NCBI RefSeq assembly: GCF_006345805.1 | Contig: NC_043012.1 | Location: 23,436,001 to 23,500,000 of the forward strand | Reading direction: 5' to 3' | Source: Octopus sinensis | Taxonomy: Eukaryota | Length of the DNA stretch: 64,000 nucleotides | Part shown: piece after piece, positions 6,543-59,149 of the stretch | How positions within the stretch are numbered: position 1 is the stretch's first letter | Layout: every line of letters starts with the position of its first letter | Translations under genes and position numbers: made by a program | The notes under the pieces: model-generated | The model's input: only the letters and a program-made list of their open reading frames with translations | Database searches by the model: none | What the model was told of the DNA's origin: nothing

Positions 6543-6574
<32 letters not shown>

Positions 6575-6717
6575 TATGCATATTATATATATATATATGC
6601 ATATATATATATATATATATATATATGATCTATATATATATGTTATATATATATGTATATATATATATATATATGTATGTGTATATATATATATATACAT
6701 GTATGTGTCTATAATAT

Positions 6718-6748
<31 letters not shown>

Positions 6749-6910
6749 ATATATAATTATATATATATATATAGTATGTGTATATATATATAATATATTA
6801 TATATATATATATATTGTATTGGTATATATATATATATATATTATATAGGTTGGTGTATATATATAGATATAATATATATATATATACATATATTTGTTT
6901 GTATATATAT
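6085..6910. repeat. Long compound (TA)n microsatellite; similar tracts at 15920-16920, 20210-20450, 27420-28110, 28800-29300, 29660-30990, 47320-48072 and 52701-52920
   Basis: Direct inspection; these tracts are the source of all YIYI/MYMY-type ORFs. Confidence 0.98.
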
Positions 6911-7526
6911 GTACGTATATATATTTGTTTATTTATTTATTTATTTCCATTTTGCATTTAATCTGCAGAGCACTCTTTACACTTTCAGCACTTGCCTCTT
7001 CCAGTTCAGTCTCTGAATCATTCTCTCTCTCTCTCTCTCTCCTTCTCTCATTTTCTTTTATTTCCATTTTATAAATTCCCTTTTATCCATCTTACTGCTC
7101 AACATACTCCTCATCTTCATAGCTTTATTCAATGGCTCACTGCCCAGCTTTCCATCCATCTTGGTGAAAGTAGTGGTAATGAATAATGTTGTTGTTGATG
7201 ATGATGATGATTGATGATGATGATTGATCATCATCATCATCATCATCATCATCAAGGTGGTGCTAGTCGTGGTGATGGCAATGACGTAATTTCCTATATT
7301 GCAGAACTTGCATTTTATTCTAGAAGTTTCAAAAAAATATTTTGGTAGTGTACCAAACAGGCAGTAAACTTCTAAAATGACATAAAAGAGATTTTTATGC
7401 AAAAAAAAAAAAGTATGAAGATGAAAACCGCACAGTGTTTCAAAGTTGATACTTTAAGAAAATTAAGTATTTAACATCAGTTTATAAAAATATATAATAT
7501 ATAATAACATATAAGAATATATAATA

Positions 7527-15052: not shown

Positions 15053-15917
15053 CAGGGTGTGAAAGGTAAATTGCCAACATTTTATACTTTTAATTTTGCG
15101 CATGTGCATTGTTTGTTTTTGATTTTGTTGACTACACAGTAGAGTAGGGTCAGCTGTGCACCGTCTCCGACAAAAACAGCATCATGAGGCATTTGACTCT
15201 GCCAGAAATTTGGAAACGGCATGCTGTACTGCTTGGTATTCACATCAGAAGCTCTAACACAACAGATGGTGAACACACAGAACAACCATTGGCTTGTCAT
15301 GTCCCCAAAACATGTACCAAAAGTGATAAAAATCAAACAGCCAGTCAACATCATGCTGTTTGGAGTGATCACTAGTGATGGTGCATTATGCTTCCATTCA
15401 TCTTCTCACATGGCCTCAGACTCAACATGGAGGTCTACATCAAGTGCCTGGAGGAGGCAGTGCTGGCCTGGATCAGAGGGTGGCTGCTGGAAGACCCTAT
15501 GTTTGGCAACAAGACTCTGCACCATGCCACACAAACAGGAGAATCGAGTCATGGCACACAAACAGGAGAACCATATCACTCCTAATATCTGGCCACCTAA
15601 CACCCCAGACTGCAAACCTTAATTATGTGTGGGTCACAGTTGAATGAGAGACCAACAAAACTCCTTGTAGCACCAAAGATGAACAGAAGGCAAGAATTTA
15701 TGGCAGCATTCACCAATTTAAACAAGGAGCCCATTCAGAAGAGTTGGAGGAGATTTCAAAGTTGTCTGGAGGTGATGATTGAAGCTGATGGCAATTTTAA
15801 TGAATACATTTACTCTTTAGTATTTCAAGATATTTTTATGTAATTTTGGTAAATATAGCTGTTTAAATGAGATGTCAGTGGTATTTTCATTTAGACAGCA
15901 GTTTATTCACTGCACCC

Positions 15918-15919
<2 letters not shown>
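15053..15919 (+). mobile_element. Decayed, internally deleted Tc1/mariner transposon (maT/DD37D-like)
   Basis: Across three frames: PVNIMLFGVITSDG / MLPFIFSHGLRLNMEVYIKCLEEAVLAWI / VAAGRPYVWQQDSAPCHT / NIWPPNTPDCKP / AAFTNLNKEPIQKSWRRFQSCLEVMIEADG. Ends CAGGGTG...CACCCTG followed by TA. Confidence 0.85.
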
Positions 15920-15948
<29 letters not shown>

Positions 15949-16668
15949 TATAAATATATATACTTATATATACATATATATACATATTTATACATATATA
16001 TATATATATACATGTATACATACATACATACAAATATACATACATATTATATATATATATATACATACATATATTCATACATATATATATATATACATAC
16101 ATATATACATACATATACATACATATATATATATATACATATATATACATGCATATATATACATACATATATATATACATATATATACACATATATATAC
16201 ATACATCATCATCATCATCATCATCATATATATACATACCCATATATATATATACACCCATATATATATACACATATATATATATATACATACATATATA
16301 TATACACATATAATACATACATATATATATATACACACACATATATATACACACATATATACATACATATATATATATACACATATATACATACATATAT
16401 ATATATATATACATATATACATACATATATATATATATACATATATACATACATATATATATATATAGATATACACACATATATATACATACATATATAT
16501 ATACACATATATACATACATATATATATATATAGATATACACACATATATTACATACATATATATATATATAGATATACACACATATATATACATACATA
16601 TATATATATATATGTAATATATACACACATATATACGTACATATATATATACACACACATATATATAC

Positions 16669-16726
<58 letters not shown>

Positions 16727-27485: not shown

Positions 27486-27592
27486 AATACACATATATTT
27501 AAGCCACAATATATGGATCCAACTAATCCAGTGGTCCTCATTAAAAAAGGTCGTTATGTATCATTCTACAAAACATAAATGTGATATTAGAA

Positions 27593-27649
<57 letters not shown>

Positions 27650-27767
27650 CAACACATACAAACATATATAAATATATATATACATACATATATATACACA
27701 TATATACACATATATATACAAATATATATACACACACATATATATATACACATATATATATACATAT

Positions 27768-27799
<32 letters not shown>

Positions 27800-27872
27800 T
27801 ACACACACCCACACACACATATATATACATACATATACACACACACACATATATACATACATATACACACAG

Positions 27873-27907
<35 letters not shown>

Positions 27908-27969
27908 ACTATATAATATACATATATATATATATGGAATACCATATATACATATATATATATATGCAT

Positions 27970-28068
<99 letters not shown>

Positions 28069-28215
28069 TATATACACATATATACATATATATATACATA
28101 TACATACCTGTGACTGAAAGCAAAACCAGGAGGTTGGGAAGCAAGCTTTTTAAAAGCTCTGATTAACAAGAGGATTAATTAATAATATAATATTGCATTA
28201 AAATGATATGTAACA

Positions 28216-28850: not shown

Positions 28851-29727
28851 ATGTGTGTGTGTATAAGTGCATGTGGGTATGTACATGTGAGTATATATAT
28901 ATACACATATATATATAAATATGTGTGTATTTATATGTACATATATACATAAGCACACACAAGAAAACATACTGATATATGTAAACTTATACACCCATAC
29001 ACAGACATATTTGTACATATATAAATATATGTACATATATGCATTTGTTGTGAATATATGTAAATATGTATGTGTGTTGTGTGTGTATACATATATACAC
29101 ACACACACATGTATGTATTAGAATTATGGAGACAAACACAGAGACTATACACCACACACCACACACACACATATATATATATATATATACACACACATGT
29201 ATATATTAGAATTAAAGAGACAGACACAGAGTGTATATATATATATATATACACACATACACATATATATATGTATATACACATAGATCGATAGATAGAT
29301 ATGTAGACATAGACACACAAATCTGGCATAAATACAAAAACTAGAGAAAAATAAAAACAAAAGAAAAATAAAAATAAACACTTGGCAAATAAATACAAAT
29401 AAATACATGCAGTAAATGTTCTGGCTAAGTATAATTCAGATAAAAGCATTTCATACATTATACACCCTCTCTGCAATCCTCTGTACAAACTAATGTTTTG
29501 ATAAATTAACTTATAGGACAAAATCGGACAATGATATATTACCTTCTATGTAATTAAGTATAGTTGTTTACATTCTGTACTGTTTAGGAATATCTCACTA
29601 ATATATTATGCGATATCAAAATATTATCTGATGCATTCAGTTGTATAAGGACACACACAAATTCATATATATATATATATACACAGCACATGCAACATAT
29701 GTATATAAAAAATACATATGTAACATG

Positions 29728-29773
<46 letters not shown>

Positions 29774-30362
29774 GTACAACAAATGTATGCATACATCAAA
29801 TATATGCAGTAATATATATATATATATATAATATATGTACAAACAAATGTATGGCATAGACAAATATATGCAGTATAATATATATATATATATATAAATA
29901 TATATATATCTATATATAATATATATCTTTACATTTATACAATATATCTTTCTTTCTATCTATCTAATCTATTATTTATCTATCTATCTATCTATATCTA
30001 TATATATATATATATTACACACACACCCACACGTTATTAACAATATATTTACACATCTGTAAATTTATAAAGTATGCATGCGTGATATATATAACATATG
30101 CACATGTGGGAAAAACTACACACATGTCTATTTACAATGAATTATAATTTCTTCACTGTGTACAAAGCTCATGAAAAAGAAAATTAGTCATATAATAAAA
30201 GTACTATGTCTTAGTATATAAATAAATATATATATTTATATATATATAATATATATGCCTGTATTAATATACATACATGTTACATATATACAATATATAT
30301 ATAATATAATATACAGATATATGTATTTCATATATATATATATGAACACATATGTTCGACCT

Positions 30363-30396
<34 letters not shown>

Positions 30397-30526
30397 ATAT
30401 ATGTGTGTGTGTGTGTGATGTGTGCATGTATACACTCACAGATACACATACATACAAAAAGACAGACAGTATTTGAATTTTCCTGAGGAATGAAATAGTT
30501 TTCTTATTTCCTTCAGATATTATGAA

Positions 30527-30579
<53 letters not shown>

Positions 30580-30784
30580 TCATATGCAAATGCATGTTTG
30601 TATCTATGTATGTATCATGTACATACATCTCTATATATAATATATATATATATATATATACATATATATATACATATGGTGTATATATTTGAATTATATG
30701 GATGATACCATACTAAATTTCGGGGCCTTATCTTAAGTACCATATTCAACTGAATCAAATTTTACTTACATAAAAATATATAAC

Positions 30785-46907: not shown

Positions 46908-47320
46908 GCCGCTGTGCTTGAGGAGACCTGTTGAGTCAAGTACATGAACACTCCGAACACCCCTCCCCACTGGTGCTCCACTATATTTCTGCACCCTCCC
47001 CCCCTACATAAAAAGCACCATCCGAACGTGGCCGATGCCAGCACCGCCCCGACTGGCTTCTGTGCAGGTGGCACATAAAAAGCACCAACCGACCGTGGCC
47101 GATGCCAGACCCCTCTGGCACCTGTGCAGGTGGCACGTAAAAAGCACCCACTACACTCGCGGAGTGGTTGGCATTAGGAAGGGCATCCAGCTGTAGAGAC
47201 ACTGCCAGACCAGACTGGAGCCTGGGGCAGCCCCTGGCTCCCCAGACCCCGGTCGAAACCGTCCAACCCGTGCTAGCGCGGAAAACGGACGTTAAACGAT
47301 GATGATGATGATGATGATGA
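46908..47320 (+). mobile_element. SINE-like family B with internal about 60-bp tandem units and (GAT)n tail
   Basis: GGCACRTAAAAAGCACC units x3, then TTGGCATTAGGAAGGGCATCCAGCTGTAG...GGAAAACGGACGTTAAACGATGATG. Other copies at about 8940-9385, 13360-13865, 21372-21642, 35280-35460 and 56565-56900 (-). Confidence 0.8.
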
Positions 47321-47567
47321 TATATATATATTAATAAATGAAATAAAACATATGCATATATATAAGCATATATGTACGTACCTACCTCTACATGTACATA
47401 TACACGCATATATTATATATATATTATATATATATATATATACATATATATATACATATACATATATATATATATACATATATATACATATACATATATA
47501 TATACATATATATACATTTATATACATATCACACACATTTATATATATATATACATATATATACCAC

Positions 47568-47603
<36 letters not shown>

Positions 47604-47632
47604 TATATATATATATATACATACACACATTC

Positions 47633-47667
<35 letters not shown>

Positions 47668-47909
47668 TTTATATATATATAATATATAATACCCACATTT
47701 ATATAATTATATATATATATATACATTTATATATATATACATACATTCATATATATATATATATTATAATACACATTTACATATATATATATATTATATA
47801 TATATATTATAATATACACATTTACATATATATATATATATATATATAATATATAATATACACATACATATATATATATTATATATTATATATATATATA
47901 CACATTTAC

Positions 47910-47941
<32 letters not shown>

Positions 47942-48396
47942 TTACATATATATATATATATATATACGCATTTACATATATATACACATTTTATAATATA
48001 TAACATATTTACATATACAATATATACATATACATATATATACTATACATATATATACATATATATACATATAGTGGATTAACTGTTGAAGTGGATGGAC
48101 GTCTATTTGTTTCTCTCCCAGTCAGTAGCAAGCTACACAGCTTCAAAACTAACTGACCTTAAATATATATATATTTGTAACCACGTGTTTGCCTACAAAC
48201 CCGTAAGTACGTTTTCATTTAACTACAAACTGTTATATACACCTGTTTTTCTTTTAATATCCTCAAACAACCAAATAATCAAAAACTCACACCCTTAAGA
48301 GAGAACATTTATATATATATACACTTCTTTAACTCCCAAAAAAATATATATATATTTTCAAAAATCAAAAGGAAAACAAACAAAAGAAAAACAAAC

Positions 48397-49674
48397 ATGA
48401 CTAACTTGCAGGCCTGCAACAGACGAAATTGGTCTGATAACGAAATTGATGTTTTAATAAACACATGGTTCTCTCTTTCCCAAACAGAAAATCTAAATGT
48501 CTTGTGTTTGAATGAGATTGCCGAAAAAACATCACAAGTGGTCAACACACGATCCGTCAAACAGATTCGTAGCAAGCTGAAACATATCGAAGTATCTTTC
48601 AAACTGATAAAAGGCCATTATGAAAAGCTTCTTCATATTTTCACAGTTAAAGAACAGCAACAGCTAGAAAATCAGCAGCCACAACAACAACAACAACAGA
48701 ATGAGCCACTCCTGGTTCCCAGCACAATGGCTGACCCTAACATCGGTCAAGCACAACAACAACAACAACAGCCACAGCAACAAGAACAACACAGCCACTC
48801 CTCAACTCTAGCTTACTAGACGATTCACTAAATGCCAGTATCTTTTCACACCGCTCTCACAGCAACCACCACAATTATCATCATCATCATCACCACCGCT
48901 GCCACCATCGTCTTCTATCACCAAAAATACCAACAGAAAACCAAATAAGAAACCATTGCCCTCTTCCCCCACATCACCACCTCAATACTACTGCAGTAAC
49001 AAAAACTTAAAGAAACATAGGAAGCAGAATGCGCCCCCCACGGCACAAACAAGAAATCCCCAAATATGCGCTATTCACTGCGCCCAGAGACTCTGCACAA
49101 ATAGTGCTGCATCTTCACGCATCTACCCGGCACTAGACGCACTACCGGCCAAGGCCAAAGCACGCATCCCACAATAACATCAACACCACCAAATAGTAAA
49201 TCGAAATTCAAACACACACAACTTGGAGTCCCAAAATCTGCCGGTATTCCCAACGTGAGAGAACATGTCTACTGAGTGACTGTCCCTTCACTCATCTTCC
49301 AGGGACCCGACGCACAAACAGAACGGGGCTTCAAGCCAACACACAAACCTGAATAAAAATAAAAATAAAACACACCATGCTGCAGTAATGCTGGTCCAGT
49401 CTTTTCAGGAAGACACAAAAACAACAACAACAAAATGGAAACTACAACCCTATCAACAGTGCAACCACACCTCCAGCCAAAAACTGCTCCCTAAGCAGGA
49501 AATTCTTTTTTAGCCATGTTGAACATGGCAAAAGAGATACACAAAAACATTCTAGCCATCACTCAACACCATCCTATGCTATTACCCCCAGTGCACCAAT
49601 TCCCCACATTGCTGCCACTAACACACACAAAAAATCCAAGCCCCCTGCAACACAGTCAAACACCACTACACTAA
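48397..49674 (+). CDS. LINE ORF1 (frameshifted as given): Myb/SANT-like trihelix domain + polyQ + Pro/Ser-rich linker + two CCCH zinc fingers + C-terminal helix
   Basis: N-term RRNWSDNEIDVLINTW...LNEIAEKTSQVVNTRSVKQIRSKLKHIEVSFKLIK. Finger 2 is intact in one frame at 49230-49316 (PKICRYSQRERTCLLSDCPFTHLPGTRRT, C-x8-C-x4-C-x3-H); a frameshifted paralogous finger at about 49058-49143 ends CIFTHLPGTRRT. C-term GNSFLAMLNMAKEIHKNILAITQHHP... stops at TAA 49672-49674. Confidence 0.7.
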
Positions 49675-52618
49675 CCTCCACATTCCTACTCAATGCACAA
49701 GGTGTCAGCCCTTCCATCAATGCACAAAAAAATGGAAGGTCCAATCATTGAAGACTGGGTTGGTAACCATTCCACACCACATCCCTTTCTTCATTCTCAC
49801 TGAGACCCACTTGACAACTCCCACTTGGAAGCCGAAGTGAGAGTGAAGAATTTCACAACCATCCGCGCGGATCGTATCGGCAGGAGGAAGGGTGGAACTG
49901 CCATTTTCCTGCATGATTCATTTACGGCAGATGGAAATAGTATATTCTCCAACGGCTACTGTGAATCAGTCACCGTGCACAACAAAGCCAATGACCTGAC
50001 AGTAATGGGCTCTATAGGCCGCCCCAAACACCCATACTGTGCTTTAAAGAATGCCTCAACAGCATTAAGTGCTTTATTCAACAGTGCCATTCTAGCAACA
50101 TACTCATGATGGGAGACTTCAATCTACCCTGTGTTGACTGGACTACAAACTGTTTGAAACCAAGCACTCCCGCCTCAACCGCTGACAAAGAAGCAGCAGA
50201 GTCACTTTTCGACTTTACGAATGAGTTTTTCTTGTCCCAACTTGTCCTTGCACCAACAAGACATCAGAACATTTTGGACCTAGTGTTTAGTAACCACACT
50301 AACACTATACATAACGTTACAGTGGAAAAAACCCTTCTTTCAGACCATGACATGGTTCTCTGTAACATGAAATTCCACCAGCTGAAAGCTAATCCTAGTG
50401 ACCTTCCTCCAGCCCACCCATTTGACAACACGGATCTCCATAAAGCCAACTGGGATGCAATCAGGAACGAGCTATCAAATGTTGACTGGTCCTTTACACA
50501 TACACACATCTCCACCAACCATAAAACATCTTGGCAGATCTTTGTAGACACCGTCACAGACATATGTGCAAAACACTCCCCACCAAGACCTGTGAACAAA
50601 AAGTGCAGAATCCCCCAAAACAGAAAAACCATTATCAGAAAAATAAAAAGAACAAACAAAAAAATTAACAAACTAAAGTACTGCCAACAGCAACACCACA
50701 TTCGACGGCTATCGCACTGCTTGAATCCAAAAAATATAACCTCCAACAATGCATGAAGACCCTCATCATAACCAAAGATCAGTTGAGGAGAAGTGGGCCA
50801 TTGAAAAAATCAAACTCAACCCCAAAGTGTTCTTTTCATTTGCGAGGAAACGCAGGGTCACTGTCTCCACTGTAGGCCCTCTAATTGACGAAACTGGCAC
50901 TCTCCAAGATAATGCCAAATCCATGGCCGAGATACTGCAGAAACAATACTGCTCTGTTTTCAGCAATCCTGATATGGCCGATCTGGGCTGTATCAGTGAT
51001 GTCAACCCCCAACACACTATATCGGACATAACGTTTAGTGCCCCTGATGTCTTAGCGGCGATAAACGAAATAAAACACAATTCAGCAGTAGGCCCCGATA
51101 GGTTCCCTGCTTGTGTCCTGAAGGTGTGTCGACACCAACTTGCATCTCCTTGCTAATCTGTGGAGAAACTCACTGGATGCTGGCTATATTCCAAAAAACC
51201 TTCTGTCCCAGTCTGTTGCCCCAGTTTTCAAAAAGGGAAACAAGTCCCTTGCAGTGAATTACCGTCCGATCTCACTCACCTCTCATATCATCAAGGTATT
51301 TGAGAGGGTGGTGAGATCTCGAATAACCCAATTTCTGGAAAGCAACAGACGGCTGATCTCCAACCAACATGGGTTCCGTAATGGAAGGGACTGCCTAACG
51401 CAGCTCCTGCATCACTTTGAGGACATTTTGAGAGCTTTGGGAGAGGGCTCCAACACCGATGTCATCTACCTTGATTTCAGTAAGGCCTTCGACAGGGTCG
51501 ATCACAAGATCCTATTGAAAAAACTATCCAACATTGGTGTCTCTGGAAAGTTACTGAAATGGATCAAGTGTTTCCTGACAGACAGATCTCAACATGTTGT
51601 AGTTGAAGGGGTAAAATCAAGCCCAGCCAAAGTCAGTAGTGGCGTTCCGCAAGGCACTGTGCTGGGCCCACTTCTTTTCATCATTTACATTAATGACATT
51701 AATGACATCATCAAGCACAGCAACATAAAAATCTTTGCAGATGACTCCAAGCTACAGAAGGTCATAAATGAGGTGAGTGACCAGACATGCCTTCAGTCAG
51801 ATCTACTGGCTGTTATCCAATGGGCAGAAAAAAACAATATGCTGCTGAACGAGGATAAATTTGAGCTAATCCACTTTGGAAAAGAGGATGCCCTGAAACT
51901 CCCATACTCCCTTCCTTCAGGTGAAACTCTCGCGGCGTCCAACAAATCAGAGACTTGGGAGTAATTGTGGACAACAACATAAGCTGGGCCACTCATATAA
52001 ACACCAAAGTTGACATGGCCCGCAGAATGTGTTCCTGGATTCTCAGAACTTTCCAGTCGAGAGATATCCACACCATTATCCTTCTCTTCTCCACTTTTGC
52101 CCGACCCCACCTTGAATACTGTTGTCCACTGTGGTCTCCCCACACAATACAAGGTATCATAAAAGTTGAAGCACCTCAAAGGGCAATCACAAAAAAGATA
52201 GATGCATGACAGGCCTCGACTATTGGGGTCGACTAGAAAAGCTAAAACTCTATTCTCTCCAACGTCGTCGTGAGCGCTACATCATCTGCATGATGTGGAA
52301 AATATTCCATCAGCATTGCCTAAATGATGTTGGCATCACCTTCAAGGTACATCCAAGGCTTGGGCCCCGTGCCATCCGCCCAAAACAAAAATCGCACTCT
52401 CATCTCATAACAACAATACGGCACAATTATTTCACCTCAATTGGCCCCGCTCTCTTTAACATTACACCAAAACCATTAAAACAGAAACTGACCCTATAGG
52501 GTTCAAGAAGTCTTTGGACAGATTCCTTCAAGAAATCCCGGATAAACCCCCTACACCTGGATATGTCTCTGTAAACAATAACTCTCTACTTGAGTGGGCC
52601 ATAGTGCCCAAATTCTGA
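49506..52618 (+). CDS. LINE ORF2: apurinic-like endonuclease + reverse transcriptase (several frameshifts in this sequence)
   Basis: APE motifs TFLLNAQG, ILTETHL, RADRIGRRKGGTAIF, LYRPP, MGDFNLP, NILDLVF, LSDHDMV. RT motifs NYRPISLTSHIIKVFE, QHGFR, YLDFSKAFDRVDH, GVPQGTVLGPLLF, FADD, DLGV. C-term LYSLQRRRERY...PTPGY...NSLLEW, stop TGA 52616-52618. Confidence 0.95.
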
Positions 52619-52865
52619 CTTGAAAGACTTCACCAGGTGGTGCTATTAAGTTAGACATGGCCTGGGCCAATAATGGCCGAAACCTATCAAAGTATCAAAG
52701 TACATACACATTTACATATATATATATACATATACATACACATTTACATATATATATATACATACACATTTACATATATATATATATACATACACATTTA
52801 TATATATATATACATACACATTTATATATATATAATATATATATACATACACATTTATATATATA

Positions 52866-52919
<54 letters not shown>

Positions 52920-57898: not shown

Positions 57899-58250
57899 AA
57901 GGAAAACCTTCATAATATCAAAGACATATATAAGAAAACCTTCATAATATCAAAGACATATCTAAGAAAACCTTCATAATATCAAAGACATATCTAAGAC
58001 ATATCTAAGAAAACCTTCATAATATCAAAGACATATCTAAGAAAACCTTCATAGTATCCAAGACATATCTAAGAAAATCTTCATAATATCAAAGACATAT
58101 CTAAGAAAACCTTCATAATATCAAAGACATATCTAAGAAAACCTTCATAATATCAAAGACATATCTAAGAAAACCTTCATAATATCAAAGACACATCTAA
58201 GAAAACCTTCATAATATCAAAGACATATCTAAGAAAACCTGCATAATACA
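57899..58250. repeat. 32-bp minisatellite, about 11 copies
   Basis: Unit AAGAAAACCTTCATAATATCAAAGACATATCT, nearly homogeneous, with one internal partial duplication. Confidence 0.97.
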
Positions 58251-59149
58251 AAACAGATCATTTGGGAAATTCATAATATTGCCCAGTTCAATCAAATGCA
58301 GTAATCTGGATTTAATAGCTTAGAGAATGGTACTAATCTAAGGAGTGTAACTAACAACGACCTGCACAAGAGTTAGGCATTTGAATTATCATTTCAGTAC
58401 GAATACTGAAATAAATAATAAAAAATTAATGCATGTTGGGCTAATAATGGGTCAACACAGAACATTACAATGGCTGGCTGCTTGCAGATCATTGATTGAT
58501 CAAACCTGACTGAGATTATTCAAGAACAATATTTCCATAAAATCAGATTTATTTTTAATGTCATCTCATCAATCTCTTCAACTTTACACTTAAATTGTCT
58601 AAACTTATGATAAGCTGAATCTGAAAAGATTAAATATGATTGTAAACATTAATAAAAAATAAAGTAAAATAAAATAAAATAAACTAAAACCTTAGTAAAG
58701 CAGCTTTTATTTATATATCTCAACATTGAATATTGTCTAAATACTCGAGTTTGACAAATTCTTCCGAAATCTTGTATTACTTTTTGCAAATAAAAACAGT
58801 TTATATTTTCATCAGAAAATCTCCTTCAGACATGACAAATAATTGATTGTCTGGATTATAAAAACGAGGATGATTAAACAAGAATGGAACACTTTCAGCA
58901 AACTTAACCCAAAGGAATAAACTATAATACTTATTCCGTTTTGCATTCCTTTATATTTCCAGATGTATTTCACTACTAATGTATCTCTTCCTTAATCCCT
59001 TTTTTTTTTTTTGTCTTTCTGATTTGCTAAACATTTTAGTCAACTTCTTATTCTTTAGGAATGGTAGTCTTTATGACATAATCACATCTCTGCTCAGTGT
59101 ATTCATAATCAGAGAAGGCATAGAAGAAGGTAAAAAAACAAATGATGAT

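Follow-up and report, generated by a model that had tools for sequence, protein, structure and literature searches.

A probable CR1-group LINE in Octopus sinensis with a predicted ORF1 of Myb/SANT-like and CCCH-type finger modules

The element and its reading frames

We analysed a 64,000-nt stretch of Octopus sinensis DNA (NCBI RefSeq assembly GCF_006345805.1, contig NC_043012.1, positions 23,436,001 to 23,500,000 of the forward strand), hereafter called the window, in whose coordinates all positions are given. On its + strand, 48074-52702 holds a full-length copy (about 4.6 kb) of a retrotransposon without long terminal repeats (non-LTR), or long interspersed nuclear element (LINE), and this copy is heavily frameshifted. 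About four frame changes are needed to read its first open reading frame (ORF1) and at least eight to read ORF2; the copy is therefore old and dead. No second copy of the element was found within the 64-kb window. Taking all lines of evidence together, we hold it for probable that this is a long-dead CR1-group element of the apurinic/apyrimidinic endonuclease (APE) type, whose single ORF1 joined a Myb/SANT-like domain, a polyglutamine (polyQ) tract, a disordered Ser/Pro/Thr-rich linker, two CCCH fingers and a helical tail overlapping ORF2.

The features are collected in Table 1. By direct translation, the ATG at 48397 opens 'MTNLQACNRRNWSDNEIDVLINTWFSLSQTENLNVLCLNEIAEKTSQVVNTRSVKQIRSKLKHIEVSFKLIKGHYEKLL', and the longer + strand translation from the same ATG reads 'MTNLQACNRRNWSDNEIDVLINTWFSLSQTENLNVLCLNEIAEKTSQVVNTRSVKQIRSKLKHIEVSFKLIKGHYEKLLHIFTVKE' followed by Gln-rich runs up to the stop. 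An earlier note on this DNA, made from the sequence alone, had described an ORF1 at 48397-49674 with a Myb-like start, polyQ, a linker and two fingers leading into ORF2, and three-frame translation of 48340-49900 reproduces that layout.

ORF2 consists of an APE-type endonuclease (EN; PF14529/PF03372) followed by a reverse transcriptase (RT; RVT_1). The closest of 7516 RT homologues are P0001 (81% identical) and P0015, a copy in the Argonauta hians genome (63%); these matches point to an octopod-type host. In the scanned C-terminal pieces (about 51925-52615) Pfam gave no match of any kind after the RT, and so none to RNase H or CCHC, a weak negative in so degraded a copy. The 3' untranslated region (UTR) aligns with the 3' ends of three other loci fetched through RT homologues (L001 7548-7632, L002 7440-7530 and L003 7300-7392). 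RNAalifold applied to these 3' UTRs predicts two hairpins of 14 pairs, 4 of which show compensatory changes; an Rfam scan of the window returned no family. The 3' ends lack poly(A) and carry tandem repeats of an octamer that is lineage-specific (TATCAAAG, CCAAAGTA, CCCAAGTA). A 3' UTR hairpin with a tandem repeat of about 8 nt in place of poly(A) is a hallmark of CR1, and the C-terminal pattern 'LEYC..WSP...QR..TK.I...RL..L.L.SL..RR.R' presumably resembles that of chicken CR1. Domain order, C-terminal motifs and the octamer 3' end are thus consistent with membership of the CR1 group (Jockey superfamily).

Table 1. Features of the element and its flanks in window coordinates (TRF, Tandem Repeats Finder; AF2, AlphaFold2; pN and pS, proportions of nonsynonymous and synonymous differences)
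Feature	Positions	Strand	Evidence and remarks
Upstream flank, (AT)n/(ACACATTTACATATATAT)n microsatellite array	47408..48073		TRF and direct reading; unit recurs 3' of the element
Putative 5' UTR	48074..48396	+	Between microsatellite end and ORF1 ATG; inferred boundary; DNA homology with L007 from 48375
ORF1 N-terminal Myb/SANT-like domain (PF13837, trihelix-type)	48397..48660	+	Pfam, phmmer, hhalign, AF2, pN<pS
Gln-rich low-complexity tract	48661..48819	+	Translation; closes at in-frame stop 48817-48819
Ser/Pro/Thr-rich linker, frameshifted (+1 frame)	48820..49066	+	Three-frame translation
CCCH-type finger 1	49067..49142	+	One frame correction needed
CCCH-type finger 2	49239..49316	+	C-x8-C-x4-C-x3-H-LPGTRRT, read directly
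Inter-finger/tail segment, 'NTPCC..AG' motif	49369..49491	+	Kept in L004 ('NTTPCCGDAG') and P0130 ('TTPCHNSA')
ORF1 C-terminal tail 'NSFLAMLNMAKEI..IL.I..HHP' and ORF1 stop	49495..49674	+	Kept in L004, L006, L007; helix predicted in P0130
ORF2 frame start 'KFFFSHVEHGKR...LLNAQGVSPS'	49482..49748	+	Homology with the intact L004 ORF2 over its first ~56 aa, and with L007
APE-type endonuclease of ORF2, frameshifted	49690..50360	+	PF14529 E 3.9e-8 and PF03372 (matches at 50106-50357)
Reverse transcriptase domain	51140..51964	+	RVT_1 E 3e-31 (match at 51236-51874); 7516 homologues
ORF2 C-terminal region 'LEYCCPLWSP...QRAITKKI...RLEKLKLYSLQRRRERY', '...FKKSLDRFLQEIPD' and stop 52616-52618	51925..52618	+	Conserved in L001-L003
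3' UTR; two conserved hairpins, then TATCAAAG x2 + TA at the end, no poly(A)	52619..52702	+	Direct reading, comparison with L001-L003
Downstream flank, ACACATTTACATATATAT-like microsatellite unit as upstream	52703..52915		TRF, direct reading

The Myb/SANT-like domain, the fingers and the tail of ORF1

The earlier note had read the start of ORF1 as a Myb/SANT-like domain, and the corresponding profile match exists. More specifically, PF13837 (Myb_DNA-bind_4) matches the N-terminus with an E-value of 3.5e-6 and 27.8 bits, the curated gathering cut-off of this family being 27 bits. Two diverged relatives described below, P0121/L004 (31.7 bits) and L007 (27.3 bits), also pass the cut-off; among further LINE N-termini, P0123 reaches 15.5 bits, below the cut-off, and P0124 is not matched. 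In the Pfam comparison the Myb segments do not match PF12776, PF13873 or PF10545, leaving PF13837 as the sole match among these families.

An exhaustive phmmer search with the Myb segment against 1.84 billion representative proteins returned 9 proteins. Three are LINE N-termini encoded by short ORFs (P0121, P0123 and P0124; E 5.6e-8 to 1.6e-6, identity 31-43%) and the other six are long proteins (E 1.8e-7 to 8e-4), every one of which contains 3-7 repeats that match PF13837 strongly (E 1e-45 to 1e-126); a TINF2_N domain is present in four of these six. P0122, P0126 and P0128 join TINF2_N (the N-terminal domain of TERF1-interacting nuclear factor 2) to 3-6 tandem PF13837 repeats, a combination that is itself unusual. 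Queried with only the Myb segment, a word-indexed homology search gave no relatives, and exact look-up of the 140-aa Myb ORF of the window gave no record. Profile-profile comparison with hhalign of five LINE N-termini (profile A3) against 17 genuine PF13837 repeats (profile A5) yielded a probability of 96.6% and an E-value of 6.5e-10 over 65 columns. The alignment matches both Trp residues, the W...E...L...W pattern and the basic motif of helix 3, 'R..Q...K.K'. In addition, the AF2 model of the segment, built from a 4-sequence alignment, has three helices with a long third one (predicted local distance difference test score, pLDDT, 76.8; predicted template modelling score, pTM, 0.61).

Codon comparison between lineages gives a pN of 0.26-0.42 against a saturated pS of 0.69-0.95 for the Myb segment. 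As pN lies far below pS, the domain was maintained by purifying selection while the elements were active. Between L005 and L006, a closely related dead pair, the Myb segment is near-neutral (0.30 vs 0.37).

On this sequence-profile evidence we accept the ORF1 N-terminus as a Myb/SANT-like domain and regard the assignment as solid. That the segment is instead a region of generic kind, helical or coiled-coil, that serves oligomerisation as in the L1 ORF1 protein (ORF1p) and scores against PF13837 by chance, is very unlikely. Such a region would fit the Pfam scores, which barely exceed the cut-off, and the structural comparisons: in a Foldseek search of the PDB with the Myb model the top match is the SANT domain of DNAJC2 at a non-significant E-value of 2 (TM scores 0.50/0.60), and hmmsearch of PDB sequences with the Myb profile produced weak coiled-coil (GCN4-like) matches confined to the long third helix. 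It would not fit the passing of a curated cut-off by each of three diverged copies, nor phmmer matches beyond LINEs that are exclusively strong PF13837 proteins, nor the hhalign alignment of the diagnostic Trp pattern and helix-3 motif.

Downstream of the linker, finger 2 reads 'CRYSQRERTCLLSDCPFTHLPGTRRT', an exact C-x8-C-x4-C-x3-H; finger 1 reads 'CAIHCAQRLCTNSA/CIFTHLPGTRRT' after one frameshift correction, so that its spacing can be given only approximately. At the DNA level the two fingers are paralogues, with a local alignment score of 56 against 20.3 +/- 3.7 (maximum 33) in 500 shuffles. The finger 2 pattern C-RY-x6-C-x4-C-xF-x-H occurs in the window, L004, L007 and the frame-corrected L006, and finger 2 of the window shares 79% identity with the finger of L004 and 71% with that of L007; L006 also has an orthologue of finger 1, 'CERLCTNLECIFTHFPETRRS'. 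Finger 2 fits the CCCH-type ligand spacing C-x(7-8)-C-x(4-5)-C-x3-H with aromatic residues after C1 and C3. For all six fingers the best Pfam match is the Nab2-like zf-CCCH (PF22683), which at E 0.03-0.36 and 11-14.5 bits stays far below its threshold of 27 bits, and in the AF2 model of P0130, a protein made of finger and tail, the mean pLDDT is 49.6 and the fingers fall below 50. Of the two CCCH fingers announced by the earlier note, the C-x8-C-x4-C-x3-H-LPGTRRT pattern and the paralogy hold up, and a CCCH profile match above the Pfam threshold was not obtained. The CCCH identity is accordingly a weaker assignment than that of the N-terminal domain; it is suggested by ligand spacing, by the aromatics after C1 and C3, and by conservation across paralogues and lineages.

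The heptapeptide LPGTRRT, which directly follows the zinc-ligand His (49122-49142 and 49296-49316 in the window), is near-invariant across fingers and lineages; variants are LPGTSRT in L007 and FPETRRS in finger 1 of L006.

The ORF1 tail 'NSFLAMLNMAKEIHKNILAITQHHP...' is conserved, ends at the stop 49672-49674 and overlaps the ORF2 frame, which is open from 49482. Residues 180-198 of P0130, within its tail, are predicted by AF2 as a confident helix (pLDDT ~80). The overlap between the ORF1 tail and the ORF2 N-terminus (window 49482-49674, L004 1282-1444, L007 ~1400-1573) is conserved between copies in both readings: between window and L007, 16/25 residues in the ORF1 frame and 12/25 in the ORF2 frame are identical by hand count. 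Pfam detected no RRM, CCHC, PHD, esterase or Transposase_22 domain in the ORF1 pieces of the window, P0121, P0130 or the Myb segment of L007, and the linker segments of ORF1 are too short and of too low complexity for an RRM.

Linkage of the ORF1 parts in other copies

Whether the parts of ORF1 belong together can be read from other loci. L001 (Argonauta hians), L002 and L003 are all 5'-truncated and hence uninformative on ORF1. L007 is the contig of P0130, which the concatenated-ORF1 profile had retrieved through its finger and tail alone, without a Myb domain; upstream on this contig lies a Myb segment (55% identity to that of the window over 83 aa, E 1e-31). The DNA of L007 is colinear with window positions 48375-51769, i.e., from just 5' of the ATG to the end of the contig within the RT, and the encoded EN and RT are 58-66% and 83% identical, respectively. 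L006 likewise contains Myb, polyQ, a finger of each type (1 and 2) and the tail.

L004, fetched via P0121, is a 4569-bp contig (Logan SRR29346471) with a Myb ORF at 354-827, a finger, a tail and an intact 1093-aa ORF2 comprising EN and RT. It has one finger only, 'CRYSLRERICLQQDCTFTHLPGTRRT', followed by 'NTTPCCGDAG' and the tail 'NSFLDMLNLVKEIQRSIL', which ORF2 overlaps. ORF2 is colinear with that of the window and distant from it (RT 36%, EN 24% identity), the Myb segment is 40% identical, and the finger is by far the most similar part. This gap in similarity between ORF1 and ORF2 suggests strong constraint, an exchange of ORF1 modules between LINE lineages, or a chimeric short-read contig. 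In L005 (Logan SRR11869391), Myb and polyQ are followed at ~500-960 by a fragment of a piggyBac-type transposase (PF13843, E 1.3e-7), which stands in place of linker and fingers and stems from a nested insertion or from a join made in assembly. The polyQ tract after Myb is present in L004, L005, L006 and L007.

The order Myb, polyQ, finger(s), tail is therefore common to the window and three other loci (L004, L006 and L007), and the comparison of sequences shows that this domain order was inherited, being shared with at least three other loci of diverged lineages. In particular, the segment 48397-48620, which the earlier note had assigned to the element, is kept in other copies, L007 having been found without use of its Myb domain and being colinear from 48375, and L004 and L006 showing the same order. 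An extremely improbable alternative is that a piece of a Myb gene, from a Harbinger element or from the host, merely happens to be located upstream of a 5'-truncated LINE. The window itself holds a single copy, and most relatives fetched through the RT are 5'-truncated and silent on the question, as this alternative would allow. It does not sit with the same order at four independent loci, with the DNA colinearity of window and L007, with purifying selection on the Myb codons between LINE lineages or with the lack of a DDE transposase nearby. Chance juxtaposition is ruled out by L007, L004 and L006, barring misassembly of those contigs.

The ORF1 profile found no relatives in the viral contigs of IMG/VR or in the metagenome contigs of JGI, and scanning the latter with a degenerate DNA pattern for FTHLPGTRRT gave none either.

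In L007, one reading frame, interrupted by a single stop, runs through Myb, polyQ and the Ser/Pro/Thr-rich linker into the start of finger 1, and in the window a common frame unites Myb with the second half of finger 1, with the NTPCC motif and with the tail. Because of these shared frames, the ancestral ORF1 was most likely one protein of about 425 codons. Several observations count against this reconstruction, in addition to the sub-threshold finger profiles, the low-confidence finger model and the structural searches with the Myb segment reported above. The Myb domain of L004 forms a stand-alone 157-aa ORF, the finger being in another frame behind a stop; ORF1 of this contig is broken by two frame changes even though its ORF2 is intact. 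Furthermore, an uninterrupted ORF1 is absent among the copies found, so that the single-ORF reading is a reconstruction.

These same observations lend themselves to a reading in which the Myb-like protein was a separate upstream ORF of the LINE (an 'ORF0' or accessory protein), unfused to the finger-bearing ORF1. The Myb ORF of the window, which closes at the stop 48817-48819, and the discrete 157-aa ORF next to an intact ORF2 in L004 both speak for it. We consider two separate proteins unlikely, as the Myb domain is in frame with the start of finger 1 in L007, interrupted by one stop only, and with half of finger 1, NTPCC and tail in the window. Moreover, the finger frame of L004 has no ATG ahead of the finger, which argues that the 5' part of L004 is simply damaged. 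A single ORF1 carrying both domains hence remains our preferred reading.

Insertion site, proposed roles and known systems

A ACACATTTACATATATAT-like microsatellite unit adjoins both ends of the element. Since the same unit stands on either side, the element sits inside a pre-existing array into which it was inserted. Comparable arrays are frequent in the window (6561-7016, 15872-16718, 27556-28144 and 28931-30628), so the flanking array alone is no demonstration of targeting. The microsatellite was also considered as the element's own tail and rejected, because conservation at the 3' end ceases with the 8-nt repeat (52702) and the array unit is also present 5' of the element. TA/TGTA repeats occur just 5' of the Myb segment in L005 and L006. 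TRF also reported unrelated tandem repeats in the window, a 67-bp unit x2.2 at 47006-47148 and a 32/64-bp unit x8.5 (GAAAACCTTCATAATATCAAAGACATATCTAA) at 57902-58259.

If the parts are read as above, the CCCH fingers may bind the RNA of the element and take over the packaging role that RRM and CCHC have in ORF1 of type I. The Q-rich, disordered linker, possibly together with the long helix 3, could serve multimerisation of the ribonucleoprotein (RNP) or condensate formation. By analogy with R2 and TRAS1, the Myb/SANT-like domain might anchor the RNP on DNA or chromatin, so that it is kept in the nucleus or directed to a target site, and the helical tail in the overlap of ORF1 and ORF2 may couple the translation or the interaction of the two proteins. 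A further-reaching proposal is that ORF1p has a DNA-binding domain, sequence- or chromatin-specific, by which integration is steered, e.g., into AT-rich microsatellite arrays such as the one around this copy, and that the Myb and CCCH cassette moved between distant LINE lineages. The second part draws on the comparison of L004 with the window (finger 79% and Myb 40% vs RT 36% and EN 24%), and we regard the whole as possible, if rather doubtful.

LINE ORF1 proteins are usually seen as RNA chaperones with RRM, CCHC, coiled-coil, PHD or esterase domains, and target choice is commonly credited to the ORF2 protein. An ORF1 with Myb/SANT-like and CCCH modules would add to the range of modules known from the CR1 group. 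It would also provide a defined case, open to test, of an ORF1p that could attach to DNA or chromatin, and an invertebrate (cephalopod-type) example in a field surveyed mostly in vertebrates and insects. Its significance is limited in that the modularity of ORF1 is already accepted, every copy found is damaged, and the functions given here are inferred.

The earlier note had called the architecture possibly undescribed. This can be upheld for the searchable literature, where no description of Myb/SANT or CCCH in a LINE ORF1 was found; the point is settled only in part, Repbase and Dfam being outside that scope. A literature search for ORF1 of cephalopod CR1 elements gave nothing relevant. The ORF1 domains listed for the Jockey superfamily are CCHC, RRM, PHD, Transposase_22, esterase and zf/leucine-zipper, with Myb, SANT and CCCH unmentioned (Metcalfe and Casane, 2014; PMC4120745). 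In a 2026 survey of the vertebrate CR1 group, esterase is the sole identifiable ORF1 type in CR1 and L2, and neither Myb/SANT nor CCCH is mentioned (PMC13343379); a survey of L1 likewise contains no mention of Myb, SANT or CCCH (PMC5203782).

The predicted ORF1 resembles the catalogued ORF1s of the Jockey superfamily in being a modular upstream ORF with a zinc-binding, nucleic-acid-binding module that abuts or overlaps ORF2, and the modules of catalogued ORF1s are known to swap between lineages. It is unlike the canonical types I-IV in that RRM with CCHC, coiled-coil with RRM and CTD (Transposase_22), PHD and esterase were all undetected in the element. Khazina and Weichenrieder reportedly sorted, in 2009, the ORF1s of non-LTR retrotransposons into types I-V; in such a scheme the ORF1 of the element would fall in 'type V, unclassified'.

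The Myb-like accessory proteins of PIF/Harbinger transposons, grouped here with other Myb/SANT-like (PF13837/PF12776/PF13873, MADF) proteins, share with the element a single trihelix-type Myb/SANT-like domain and the position of a non-catalytic partner encoded by a transposable element. In contrast to these accessory genes, the element has no context of DDE transposase and terminal inverted repeats, and it matches PF13837 and not PF12776, PF13873 or PF10545. No DDE_Tnp_4-type ORF was found near the Myb segment in the window, and at all four loci this segment adjoins LINE parts (fingers, EN, RT) and not a Harbinger transposase. Capture of the domain from a Harbinger element, as proposed in the earlier note, therefore finds no support: the closest relatives outside LINEs are proteins with multiple PF13837 repeats, and the segment has no linked DDE transposase.

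Precedents for a role of ORF1p in nuclear localisation or target choice are Dictyostelium TRE5-A and the ORF1 of Bombyx SART1/TRAS. These act through protein-protein contacts or a CCHC-type ORF1p, without a recognisable DNA-binding domain. To our knowledge, the non-LTR elements with Myb modules carry them at the N-terminus (R2) or in ORF2 (TRAS1), not in ORF1. In TRAS1 (R1 clade), a Myb-like domain in ORF2 binds telomeric repeats. Like the element, TRAS1 is an APE-type LINE with a Myb-like domain, which in TRAS1 is thought to guide it to a simple-repeat target; this domain is located between EN and RT of ORF2 and is accompanied by a CCHC-type ORF1, whereas that of the element is at the N-terminus of ORF1. 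In R2, an N-terminal module of zinc fingers and Myb recognises the target DNA; both R2 and the element would combine a Myb-type helix-turn-helix module with zinc fingers in a non-LTR protein. R2 differs in having a single ORF, a restriction-like endonuclease, a c-Myb-type repeat fused to the RT protein and C2H2/CCHH fingers, whereas the octopus element is of the APE type and its ORF1 would pair a PF13837 domain of the trihelix type with CCCH fingers.

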